Shown piece after piece: positions 41,599 to 48,690 of a stretch of DNA of 64,000 nucleotides; the first letter of the stretch is position 1; each line of letters starts with the position of its first letter. Source of the DNA: Octopus bimaculoides (Eukaryota); the NCBI RefSeq assembly GCF_001194135.2, contig NC_068989.1:33164094-33228093 (forward strand), in the 5' to 3' direction. A model generated the notes under the pieces. The model made no database searches, was not told the DNA's origin, and saw nothing but the letters and a program-made list of their open reading frames with translations. The position numbers and the translations under genes were made by a program.

Positions 41599-43779
41599 GT
41601 GGAATTAGTTAAGGAATAGTCTTCAGAATGGTTTTGTTACATAAAAAGTCATAGTGTTATATTTTTCATCAGATTAACAGTGAAATAGATTAATGCTAAT
41701 ACATTTCCTTAAAGATTCAATAGGAAAAACAAATAGCTTTAAAGTCATTAACACTTATAATAATTTTTGATGATTGATATAAAAAGAAAGAGGAAATAAT
41801 GAAGCTAAGAAAAAAATGCAACTTCCTTTCTGAGAACAAATACCAATATGGCAGTTAGGTTTTTCCAGTTTGAATGCCAGACATGCAAAACAGGGTTTGT
41901 TTATATTTTTCAAATGTAATTCTTTCAAAATAGCTTAAAACTAATATATATGCTATTTATGTTTACATTAAATAGTGTCAAAGATCTAAGACTGAATATT
42001 AAATTGTACTTAACGTTTATTCCATTCGTGATGAACACAGTTTCATCAGATTTGGCCATTTACAAGTTTCTTGTACAGAAAGATGCCTTTTCAGTTAAGA
42101 ACTAAGAAGTAGAAGCGATTTTTTTTTCTCAACAAGACAAACTGAGATAAACAGTTATGTGCTTTTCCTAGGGGTACAATACGACAACTGTAACCATGAA
42201 GCCAGTAGTCTTACACCTTAACCTCACAACCACTAAGAAAAATGTTATATGCAACACTATCTAATATATATACAGTAGTATGAGAGGCTCAATAAGATAT
42301 CTGATAATTTTTTCTTGTCACATAAGCTGGTAACAAGACACTTTAAACCTTATGGTATTTAACTCATGTTGGATCAGTTTATTTAAATATATAAAAATAC
42401 TACAGAGATGATTATAACAGTGAAAGAATAATAAATATTTTATCAGTTTATAATGAATGCCAAGTTCAAATGCTCTTATTAATTATCAGAAAAAAAAATG
42501 GTAATGCCAAGAGCATGATTATTCAAGATAAAGTGTAAATGTTATGGGAATGATAAAACACACTTTTATCATAATAATAGTAATAATGTAAATCAATAAT
42601 AGTAATAATGTAAAAATGATGTTGATTATTTATCTAATAATAAAGATGTTTAACTTTGTTTAATTTTGTGTGATGACCGCCAAATGAAATGACTCTAGTA
42701 GGATTTGAATATTGACACATGATTGCAAATTTGTAATAGCTAATAAGAATCACATTCAATCAACAATAAACCTTCTTAAAAATGCATACAGATGTTAATT
42801 GTGAACTTAGGTTTCTACCTATCTCATGGAATATATACTTAGTTTAAAATATAAAGGAGTTAAACTGAAGATGAATTGGAACAGTATTAATTCTGCCAAA
42901 ACATACAAGGGGAATAGGCAAGTTTGCCATTTATGTACATATGAAGCACTGTAAATCATTTGTTAAATATGTGAAGAGAAATAATTAATTGTAAAGCACA
43001 ACTCATAATGAGGACATACATTAATATACTTGCTATTCCTTATTTCTTTCTTCTCCTCCTTTTCTTATTTTGATTGCAACAATCAAGAATGGAATGACTT
43101 TAAGTGAATCATGCATGCAAAGGATGGAAAATTGTATGGATCAATAACCAATGTTTCCTTTCATTACAGGTTACAAATCAATGACTAATACCAAAATATT
43201 TTTATAAGTGAACTTCTCTACAGTTAAATTCAAACCAGAACTATCTCTTTGAAGCTTATTGTGTTCTTTAAAACACTACATCTATAAAGGAATCTTTTTT
43301 CCAGATGACCACTGCTGCCTCTGTTTACGCATATGGCATATTTAACATGTTAAATATGCCATATGCATAAACATTTAAATCTAGAGCTGTTTCTATTACA
43401 TAATTTGATTTTATTCAGCCTAGCAATCTCTTTGCTAGGCCAATGCATTGTTTATTCAACATTTCTCTATATTTCAGACTGACTGAGGAGACTTTGTGTT
43501 GGAAGTGCATAACATTGACAAGTGGAAAAAATGGTGAAATCCACTTTCACAGTTGCTTCCAGGATGATTTTTTGCTTTGTCTACCTCTGATGTACATTGT
43601 GTTTTTAACACAGTGTCTTTAAAGGAATCTTTCATGAGATGCCCACTGCAGCCTCTAACTTTTCAGTTACATACATACATTAGTATGTCATATAGATAAA
43701 AATTTTTATCTAGAGTTCTATTGTACAATTTGAATATATACATATGCATGCATGCACACACACACACTTTTCCAACATA

Positions 43780-44000
43780 TATTCTTTTCTACTCTAGGCA
43801 CAAGACCTGAAATTTTGGGGGAGGGGGGGCCAGTTGATTAGATCAACCCCAGAATGCAACTGGTACTTAATTTATTGACCCCAAAAGGATGAAAGGCAAA
43901 GTCGACCTCAGCGGAGTTTGAACTCAGAGCGTATAGTCAGATGAAATACTGCTAAGCATTTCACCTGGTGTGCTAACATTTCTGCCAGCTCGCTGCCTTA
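43780..44000 (-). mobile_element. tRNA-derived SINE, near full length
   Basis: Head aaggcagcgagctggcagaaatgttagc, B-box gagttcaaactcc, tail ending tagagtagaaaaga. Confidence 0.8.
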
Positions 44001-44187
44001 CTTATCCAACATATACTGATCTACAATTTTACAAGCTGAACATCAACTACATTAATTTCAGTATCTTGTGAGGGCCTCCAAACTTATAGGCCCCCACCAT
44101 TTCTTCTGATTATCTTATAAAAAGAAATAACAGAAAACTTTATAAAGATCTAGTGCAAAAAAAAATATCTAATGGGAAGGACTCTTG

Positions 44188-45162
44188 TATTACATGGAAA
44201 AATGCGAGCAAGAGAAATAATATTCTTAAATTTATAAACCTGGAAAAGTACAGGACAAAAATACAGAACAAGAAAATTTCTACTTTAAAACATTGCAGCT
44301 AAGGATAAAATTTCAAATAAAATATTTAGATTTAGAAAATATTAGCTTTTATTAAAACTAAAAATTTTATTACAAGTTATTACTTCAGTTCTATATTTAA
44401 GAGATGAGGAATTATGTATATTATTTACATTCGACGGATATTTGTCCTCATCTTGTTTGTTCTTAAAGGCTGGAGGGTATATCAGCCGAAACATTGTATT
44501 AACAACAAACAAGATGAGGACAAATATCCGTCGAATATAAATAATGTAAGTTATTACTTCTATTTGTTATTACTTGTTACTTCTATTAAAAATAATAAAT
44601 AATTCAATAGAAATATTTTTTTAATTATTAATTAGAATATTAATTTAATTAATAATTAGAAAGTTGAAAATAGGTTATAAAAAATAATAGTAGTACATAA
44701 TTAGTTAGTACAATAAATTAGTTATATATTACAGTAAAATCTACCTATAACAACAAATTCACAGTAAAATTTGCTTCAGTTATTGCCTAAGTCTTCACAT
44801 TTTTTCACATTTTTACATAATGAATTTGCCTACCATATATACTATTTACTTTGCATAAAACTTTAGTTATATTGGTACTTTTGGATCTCATTTTTTGAGT
44901 ATTCTAGTGTGTCGATATTTTACCAAAATGATCGTACCTTTTTTAATTATACTGTTACGTTGTAAATTGAAGTCAAATGATTTTTAATATTCAAATTTTA
45001 TCCTTAGCTGCAATATTTGAAGTAAAAATTTTCTTATTCTGTATTTTACCAGATGTAATAAGTTGTCCTTAACTTTTCCAAGTTTAATAACTTATCCTGT
45101 ACTTTTCCAGGTTTATAAGTTTAAGAATATTATTTCTCTTGCTTACATTTTTCCATGTAATC
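44188..45162. mobile_element. Foldback/MITE-like element with long inverted arms
   Basis: Arm 44188-44325 is the reverse complement of 44985-45162; the right arm has an extra insert of about 45 bp. Confidence 0.7.
44387..44547. mobile_element. Penelope pseudo-LTR-derived mini-foldback with 13-bp TSD
   Basis: Inverted arms acattcgacggatatttgtcctcatcttgtttgt; aggctggagggtatatcagccGAAAC retained; AAGTTATTACTTC on both sides. Confidence 0.8.
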
Positions 45163-46842: not shown

Positions 46843-47036
46843 ATTATATTGAAACAAATTACAACAAAAAAATAAACGTGCAAAAAAAAATGTGATAATT
46901 CATCTTAAAAATATACTCTTAATAAAAATTAATCAAGAAACTAATTCTAATATAAAGAATATTTTCAAGATAAAAAAAAACTTTTTATAAATTGCAGAAG
47001 AAATCGTACTATGAGCTATATAGTAAGAAGCCTAGT

Positions 47037-47391
47037 TGTGGCACTCCATCGGTTATGACAACAAAGGTTCCATTTGATCCGATCAACGGAACAACCTGCT
47101 TATGAAATTAATGTGCAACTGGCTGAGCATTCCACAGACACTTGTATCCTTAATGTAATTCTCAGGGAGATTCAGCGTGACACAGAGTGTGACAAGGCTG
47201 GGGAGAAAGAAAGTTGTGGTGAAAGTGTACAGTGGGGTTCGCCACCCCCACCCACCCCTGCTGGAGCCACCAGGAGCTTTAGGTGTTTTCACTCAATAAA
47301 CACTCACAATGCCCTGTCTGGGAACTGAAACCGTGATCCTACAACTGTGAGTCCACTGCCCTAACCACTGGGCCATTGTGCCTCCAACAAC
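47037..47391 (-). mobile_element. Full-length tRNA-derived SINE with 9-bp TSD
   Basis: Head ggaggcacaatggcccagtggttagggcag; AAGCCTAGT at 47028-47036 and 47392-47400. Confidence 0.82.
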
Positions 47392-48690
47392 AAGCCTAGT
47401 AAGAAGGGAGACAAAAAATGAAAAATTGAGCAATTAACTGGCAACTGATTAAAATACGAATGTAGATTGTCAATGAAATTATGAATGTGAATGATTTATG
47501 TGTGTGTAAATTTTATTTTTTAATTGAAATACAAAAACAATATAAAAATATTTAATATAATTAGACGAAAACTATGAAATTCCTTGCAGTGTCATTGATA
47601 ATTTTTTTCCTTACCTCAATGATGCTGGTGGCATATATAAAAAGTCCACTTAGAATAAAAAAGTATGGAATAATATTATCACCCTCAAATTAGAGAAACA
47701 AATACTAATAACTTTTTCTTTTAGAACTTCATTGCATGAGATTGATACCATGAAATTCCTCGAATTGAGCTCTACCATTTAAGCTTAATTAAAATATCGG
47801 TTGTTTTTAAAATATAAAAGTTATTTATACTTGAATCCAATTTTTTTGCCTTACTTATATTTTTTTCGTGATATTTTACATCACAACTTTTTTTATACAA
47901 ATTTTTGTTGTAGGGGACAAAAACTATGAAAATCTTCATGCTTTCTTTTATCATTAAAGCTAAGATAAATATATTTTTCTTTTAAAATAAAAAGATATTT
48001 AGATCTAAACTTGACTAGTGGCGTTACTTACTCTCCTATAATGTTGCTACAAATTTTGACATAAACCTTTTTCAGCTTGACCAAATCTCAATTTTTTTAA
48101 TGCCAAAATGTAGCTAGGGACCAGTCCTCTTCAAAAATGTTAAAATTACAGCCTTAAGAATATTATTCAACTACTACCATAGTAGAATGATTAGTTGAAC
48201 AGGAGCTGAATGTTTAAATACTATGCTAAACTACTGACAACCATTGAAAAATGAAAGACAAAACCTGGTAACAAAAAATAAAATTAACATAGGACCCAAG
48301 TTTACTAATTGTAATTTACTACTAAATTTAACTAAATAATCATAACAAGCATAATTTGTTTCTCCCTAAGTTCAAGGCAAATTTTTCTGAAAAGTAAGGT
48401 ATAAACTGCTTTTACTTAGTTTATCAAGAACTTTGGATTAATACAAAACATATTATTAAACAAATAAGGATACATCTAATATACTCCTTTTATTTTGTTA
48501 TATAATTTAAAGAAATATTTAATCTGGAATGTATTTTGTATTATTAGAAAATATATCGAGAAAATATTGTTTCTACGTAACTAATGTGTGTAAACATACC
48601 ATGAAGTATATAATATGCTAAATAGAGCCTTACCTGCATACTAAAAAAAAAGAAGTAATAATTAAATAAGTAATAATTGTTGAAGGATAT

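Follow-up and report, generated by a model that had tools for sequence, protein, structure and literature searches.

A probable U12-type AT-AC intron of ancient position in the octopus cullin-2 gene

How is the cullin-2 gene (CUL2) of Octopus bimaculoides spliced at a junction that offers no usable GT-AG pair? The question is raised by a 64,000-nt stretch of contig NC_068989.1 (RefSeq assembly GCF_001194135.2, positions 33,164,094 to 33,228,093), hereafter the window, which carries CUL2 on its minus strand and in which 7.1 kb separate the first two coding exons of the gene. We conclude that these 7.1 kb are very probably the octopus copy of an ancient intron of the minor, U12-dependent class, which splits the codon of serine 40 (Ser40) of cullin-2 and is here of the AT-AC form. 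We favour this reading because the consensus signals are in place, because no usable GT-AG alternative is at hand, and because the position is common to U12-type introns of many animals, vertebrates included.

Reading frame and splice signals

The argument turns on the following features, given as positions in the window; in sequences, a slash marks a splice junction.

48691-48809, minus strand: first coding exon of CUL2, with its ATG at 48809 and 119 coding nt, ending in phase 2 (TC/)
41599-48690, minus strand: AT-AC intron of CUL2, 7,092 nt, phase 2, free of N gaps
48682-48690, minus strand: U12-type 5' splice site ATATCCTTC, its first base at intron +1
41608-41616, minus strand: U12 branch-point sequence TTCCTTAAC, which fits TCCTTRAY, with a candidate branch A at 41609
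41599-41600, minus strand: terminal AC dinucleotide of the intron
41496-41598, minus strand: second coding exon of CUL2, encoding (S) plus 34 residues and followed by the U2-type donor AAG/GTAAGA

The first coding exon ends in …AATGATCGGTTTTC at 48691 and is followed by ATATCCTTCA, so that the 5' boundary reads TTTTC/ATATCCTTCA. At the other end the boundary is CTATTCCTTAACTAATTCCAC/TGATG, and the second coding exon opens with TGATGTCTATGC… at 41598 and runs to AAG/GTAAGA at 41496. Joining 48691 to 41598 gives a gapless CUL2 N-terminus, which begins MSLKPRKVDFNATW… and reads WNDRFS/DVYALCVA across the junction. The spliced 74-residue peptide aligns without gaps with residues 1-74 of human Cullin-2 (E = 5e-24, PDB search), and the PDB chains that it matched were Cullin-2 only, together with one deposited as 'CULLIN_2 domain-containing protein'. 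An initial annotation of this DNA had proposed that the CUL2 frame is restored by an AT-AC intron, and its coordinates proved exact.

That the gene is CUL2 is clear from several exons in order, in which the sequence resembles CUL2 more than any other cullin. A tblastn search with a human CUL2 probe, whose first 74 residues are in accord with the PDB alignment, located residues 1 to about 344 in nine exons that follow in order on the minus strand from 48809 to 11692. The introns between these exons span about 1.4-7 kb, and the six other CUL2 intron boundaries that we read in the window are all canonical (AG/exon/GT). The window holds a single exon-1-like sequence. A polypyrimidine tract and an AG lie directly upstream of the first coding exon, at about 48826, and suggest that an exon of the 5' untranslated region may lie further upstream.

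The sequence marks of a U12 AT-AC intron were found at this junction: the 5' splice site, the branch site, the distance from branch site to 3' end, the coupling of AT with AC, and an orthologous position. The initial annotation had also named the U11 5' splice-site and U12 branch-point consensus sequences, and both are indeed present, ATATCCTTC at +1 and TTCCTTAAC at the proper spacing. Within the window, TTCCTTAAC occurs once on the two strands together, at 41616-41608, and ATATCCTT is present in 10 copies, where about 4 would be expected, one of them falling exactly at intron +1. A rough estimate from motif frequencies puts the chance of finding both motifs at boundaries fixed by homology at about 1e-9. 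The candidate branch A lies 10-11 nt from the last base of the intron, where a distance of about 10-15 nt between branch A and 3' splice site is expected of U12 introns; the sequence between them is TAATTCCAC, which lacks a polypyrimidine tract. Sliding the junction by one base would leave the messenger RNA (mRNA) identical, but would give CA…CA termini, which no spliceosome type is known to use.

The Ser40 position in other animals

Related loci number about 60 (L001-L003, L009-L013, L016-L060 and others), 49 of them added by a metagenome scan with exon-1 alignment. They show the following states of the intron.

L009-L011: U12 AT-AC intron at the Ser40 position, ATATCCTTAT…TTTCCTTAACGTCTGCGTAC, 223-236 nt
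L012: U12 AT-AC intron at the Ser40 position, ATATCCTTTT…TTTCCTTAACTATATCTAC, 629 nt
L021: U12 AT-AC intron at the Ser40 position, ATATCCTTTT…GCCTTGACCAATCTCTAC, 296 nt
L001, L002, L003, L013 and 18 metagenome loci: U12 GT-AG intron at the Ser40 position, GTATCCTT…, a (G/T/A)CCTTAAC-type branch site, 9-10 nt, then AG; 76-2,176 nt
L004-L008: U2-type intron at the unshifted Ser40 position, GTAAGT or GTACGT with a pyrimidine tract
L031-L033 and L046 (metagenome contigs JAAUYJ…, JAAUYM…, JAAUXU…): U2-type intron shifted by +2 nt, TCGG/GTAAGT…AG/AC, phase 1 in an Asp codon
L014 (a 661-kb genomic contig, ENA ERZ25072854, 6001-6351) and 25 metagenome contigs (many of them Ga0056…/Ga0209…): no intron at the Ser40 position

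The five AT-AC loci have the codon position and phase seen in the octopus, and each has ATATCCTT at the 5' end and, towards the 3' end, T(T)CCTTAAC or GCCTTGAC, with 9-10 nt between this motif and the final AC. Wherever both ends could be read, a start in AT goes with an end in AC and a start in GT with an end in AG. Several short database proteins run from exon 1 straight into the intron, and their …WNDRFSYP… is the translation of TC/[AG]TATCC. The initial annotation had called for a check of the orthologous intron in minor-intron databases and in other molluscs; the intron is indeed present in such a database and in many other animals. Two vertebrate loci carry the intron at the Ser40 position, between RFS and DIY: one (L051) reads CTTCTC/GTATCCTTT, with an exon 1 identical to the human one at 39/40, and the other (L052) reads GTTCTC/GTATCCTCT, with the start of exon 2 (20 residues) as in human. 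In MIDB, CUL2 appears among the minor-intron genes of both human and mouse, with CTC/GTATCCTTT at the 5' splice site (Olthof et al. 2019, PMC6717393, Tables S1/S2). Since the human 12-mer is the junction of L051, the catalogued CUL2 intron is the one at Ser40.

The intron has also been converted or lost. The shifted U2-type intron of L031-L033 and L046 has the look of an intron converted from U12 to U2 type with its boundary slightly moved, and in L014 exons 1 and 2 are fused, the minor intron being lost. Some of the intron-less metagenome contigs may be transcripts. We considered whether the U12 intron of L014 had been relocated, as its next intron starts with GTATCCTAT, but the 3' end of that intron has no U12 branch site and the idea was dropped. 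The closest CUL2 relative found, at 72% identity, is represented by a transcript-like sequence of 2,365 nt (L015, Logan SRR13891809) in which the junction is spliced as RFS/DVY. The same sequence runs on, after about 200 N-terminal CUL2 codons, into a lipid-desaturase-like frame (PF10520) and probably arose as an assembly chimera. When the window was compared at the nucleotide level with every locus fetched, the matches fell in exons only, and hence no conserved intronic element emerged.

Alternative readings and the proposed splicing route

Might canonical sites be used instead? The AT and AC could be idle in vivo, with nearby GT-AG sites, or an alternative first exon, giving CUL2 a different N-terminus. 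Our enumeration took in any GT or GC within 90 nt before or 200 nt after the 5' junction as a donor, and any AG within 400 nt before or 90 nt after the 3' junction as an acceptor. There is no shortage of candidates, as 11 donor-acceptor pairs are in frame and free of stops. Yet each of them deletes 6-44 or inserts 5-25 residues, and all disrupt the 14-residue block that spans the 48691/41598 junction. This block shows no variation in the 8 junction-spanning database matches (8/8) and very little in about 45 further loci. No GT-AG or GC-AG pair among the enumerated combinations keeps this block intact, in line with the initial annotation, which had found no GT-AG at the homologous junction. The most attractive canonical site is a donor look-alike inside the intron:

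48626-48636, minus strand: U2-type donor-like CAG/GTAAGG, 57 nt inside the intron, a candidate cryptic site

This donor is missing from the in-frame combinations. The read-through frame is open as far as the site, where a TAA overlaps the GT, and splicing to the nearest upstream AG (exon start at 41620) leads to a stop codon, as read by hand; its use would therefore end the protein prematurely. An alternative first exon fares no better, given the single exon-1-like sequence of the window, and we regard this whole family of explanations as very unlikely. Should minor splicing fail, CAG/GTAAGG could possibly serve as a cryptic site.

A different objection accepts the junction and assigns it to the other machinery. 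A small number of AT-AC introns depend on the major, U2-type spliceosome. The type of spliceosome, as is well established, cannot be told from AT-AC termini by themselves (also noted in PMC11347168). Such U2-type AT-AC introns, however, lack ATATCCTT and the TCCTTAAC branch site, whereas the octopus intron has both, at consensus quality and at the right spacing, and has no polypyrimidine tract; its orthologs moreover combine GTATCC with a U12 branch site. Excision by the major spliceosome thus seems extremely unlikely. We give just as little credit to the idea that the locus is a decaying pseudogene or an error of assembly, with an apparent junction that has no function. The window is dense in transposable elements and has four N gaps, which could invite such a reading, but the intron itself is free of gaps, nine CUL2 coding exons in unbroken succession (about residues 1-344) lie in order on one strand, six boundaries are canonical GT-AG, and both ends of the AT-AC intron stand at full consensus.

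Some observations do weigh against a U12-type AT-AC intron, or at least call for caution. We infer its excision by the minor spliceosome from sequence and orthology. The strong U2 donor look-alike 57 nt inside the intron could compete, if only unproductively. Neither the N-terminal query nor a 165-aa internal query returned an octopus or a full-length CUL2 protein. Finally, an Rfam search found no U11, U12, U4atac or U6atac gene in the window, so that the presence of the machinery in this animal rests on the literature.

If the intron is indeed of the U12 type, its removal would follow the established pathway of the minor spliceosome. The U11 small nuclear ribonucleoprotein (snRNP), and then U6atac, would pair with ATATCCTT at the 5' end, and U12 would pair with TTCCTTAAC, so that the branch adenosine bulges out, 10-11 nt ahead of the terminal AC. 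The short distance from branch to 3' end would stand in for a pyrimidine tract, and the U4atac/U6atac.U5 tri-snRNP would complete catalysis. The strong U2 donor AAG/GTAAGA after exon 2 may help to define that exon. On this route every productive CUL2 mRNA would have to pass through the minor spliceosome. The initial annotation had gone further and placed CUL2 dosage under minor-spliceosome control; this would be true only in the sense just given, as a rate-limiting role, and with it a kinetic effect on CUL2 level, would be a general inference about such introns. The practical consequence is more immediate: a gene predictor that accepts GT-AG introns alone would be expected to miss or garble the opening 40 codons of CUL2, and the junction can serve as an annotation check for the octopus genome.

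Repeat load and comparison with known minor introns

At 7,092 nt the intron holds many repeats, listed here with the strand where one was assigned.

43247-43417 and 43585-43742: diverged direct copies, about 70% identical, with a palindrome of 26-nt arms at 43322-43373
43779-44026: dispersed repeat resembling a short interspersed element (SINE), with partial copies at 30853-31043, 35871-36080 and 49131-49233
44186-45164: foldback element resembling a miniature inverted-repeat transposable element (MITE), whose two inverted terminal arms (44186-44325 and 44980-45164) measure about 140 nt and are 81-93% complementary; assigned from structure only
44386-44616: palindromic MITE-like repeat nested in the foldback element; a copy, about 72-77% identical, lies within another CUL2 intron at 30287-30539
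45517-45675, minus strand: 5'-truncated 3' end of a retroelement-like open reading frame (ORF) (…KTKTIPIVIGALGMTAKRADYYLAQIPGNPKMAEVQKIVLMGTAHILRKIVSM), adjoining an (ATT)n microsatellite
45830-46895, plus strand: GC-rich block, 44-50% GC against a background of 20-30%, with an A-rich tail; retroposed-looking
47030-47390, minus strand: second GC-rich block, 46-48% GC; SINE-like by eye
47710-47827 and 47885-48001: diverged direct repeats

The initial annotation counted at least seven insertions, which is plausible given some eight segments that resemble transposable elements; independent support exists for four of them (43779-44026, 44386-44616, 43247-43742 and 45517-45675), for the first three from further copies in the window and for the last from its protein family. 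Sequence that recurs within the window makes up only 1,079 of the 7,092 intronic nt. The ORF at 45517-45783 (minus strand) matches 11 distinct 'uncharacterized proteins' of Octopus bimaculoides at 76-91% identity, and the 45517-45675 segment thus belongs to a multi-copy family. The matches also assign the window to an octopus or a near relative of one. This ORF opens with the 2A-like peptide GGVELNPGP, which precedes a run of Asn encoded by the (ATT)n. We entertained a long interspersed element (LINE) made of this head and the retroelement tail; the head, however, is not common to the 11 octopus relatives, and because they lack it the peptide is probably fortuitous.

Other searches of the intron were negative. 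Pfam gave no matches on eight intronic ORFs, ARAGORN, run on the window, detected no transfer RNA (tRNA) heads for the SINE-like blocks, and Rfam found no tRNA match in the repeat at 43779-44026, which we take to resemble octopus SINEs. For the two GC-rich blocks, Pfam, Rfam and tRNA searches gave no support, and neither block recurs in the window. At E<=1, Rfam returned on the intron only sub-threshold, microRNA-like matches on palindromes, which we took as chance. These palindromes include two near-perfect hairpins, at 43322-43373 (26-nt arms) and 44407-44558 (60-nt arms), whose best microRNA-family match (E = 0.0045) falls far below the gathering score, and they are most likely MITE palindromes rather than microRNA genes.

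The repeat load claimed by the initial annotation is real, but it does not set this intron apart, since the neighbouring CUL2 introns, at 2-7 kb, are similar in size and carry remnants of their own. The intron between coding exons 2 and 3 contains a LINE remnant in CUL2 orientation, an ORF pair at 39564-40720 (minus strand) with RVT_1 in the ORF at 39564-40295, which exceeds in size any element of the AT-AC intron. A downstream CUL2 intron holds Helitron-like ORFs of PIF1-like helicases (PF05970, PF21530; 12777-14866, minus strand). Pfam also matches a fragment of the Pif1 2B domain upstream of CUL2 (53875-54273, plus strand), and the peptide of an ORF at 7828-8223 (plus strand) is similar to the PIF1-like ORFs by eye only. 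The N runs of the window (9464-10125, 16334-16445, 52984-53044 and 59185-59730) all lie outside the AT-AC intron, and the last two are flanked by microsatellite-like sequence whose translations are (YI)n or rich in Cys, Met, Tyr and Val. The intron may have reached 7.1 kb by the build-up of repeats in its interior, as the other CUL2 introns would have done, with the constrained signals at its ends being spared.

How does this intron compare with minor introns already described? It is not new, and the initial annotation overstated its novelty: it is the octopus ortholog of the CUL2 minor intron that MIDB catalogues in human and mouse, from which it differs in subtype and in having a perfect branch site. 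In mollusks, most introns orthologous to human minor introns are reported to be of the minor class as well (PMC11347168). What the octopus contributes is one more data point for an ancient minor intron kept at one codon position across bilaterians, which alternates between AT-AC and GT-AG, is sometimes converted to U2 type or lost, and tolerates kilobases of repeats while its end signals survive. Switching between the AT-AC and GT-AG subtypes is itself a long-recognised pattern. The orthologous CUL2 introns that we fetched share position, phase and U12 signals with that of the octopus, but they are shorter (76-2,176 nt), mostly GT-AG, and some are U2-type or absent.

The subtype may matter for the factors involved. 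AT-AC introns are reported to need DROL1/TXNL4B and, in human, CENATAC. The octopus CUL2 intron belongs to the same AT-AC class as these A-type introns, though the dependence has been demonstrated in Arabidopsis and in human cells, and not in molluscs. Octopus bimaculoides is reported to encode a protein of the DROL1/TXNL4B subfamily, which in Arabidopsis acts specifically on AT-AC introns (bioRxiv 10.1101/2020.10.19.345900). One might speculate that in an A-type CUL2 intron with optimal signals a CENATAC/TXNL4B-like dependence would tie CUL2 output to an input that vertebrate CUL2 lacks, with CAG/GTAAGG acting as a premature-stop competitor in a switch between two spliceosomes. We think this unlikely. 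The finding raises no new question, and a possible difference in factor dependence between octopus and vertebrates is its only, mildly novel, angle.

Close parallels also exist within the cullins. CUL1, CUL4A and CUL4B are minor-intron genes as well, and the introns of CUL4A and CUL4B are AT-AC (MIDB, PMC6717393). With AGA/ATATCCTTT at their 5' splice sites and the branch sites CTCCTTAAC and TTCCTTAGC, respectively, these two introns share the subtype of octopus CUL2 and have near-identical signals within one protein family, though the genes themselves are different ones. The closest counterpart remains the CUL2 minor intron of human (chr10:35063063-35071198, 8,136 nt, 5' splice site CTCGTATCCTTT, branch site AAAACCTTAATA) and mouse (chr18:3399987-3405684, 5,698 nt) (MIDB, PMC6717393). 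The gene, the codon position, the phase (…TTC TC/) and the core TATCCTT are as in octopus, and the lengths are similar, lying on either side of the 7,092 nt found here. Whereas the vertebrate intron is GT-AG with a weak branch site (MIDB score about 67), that of the octopus combines AT-AC termini with the perfect TTCCTTAAC.

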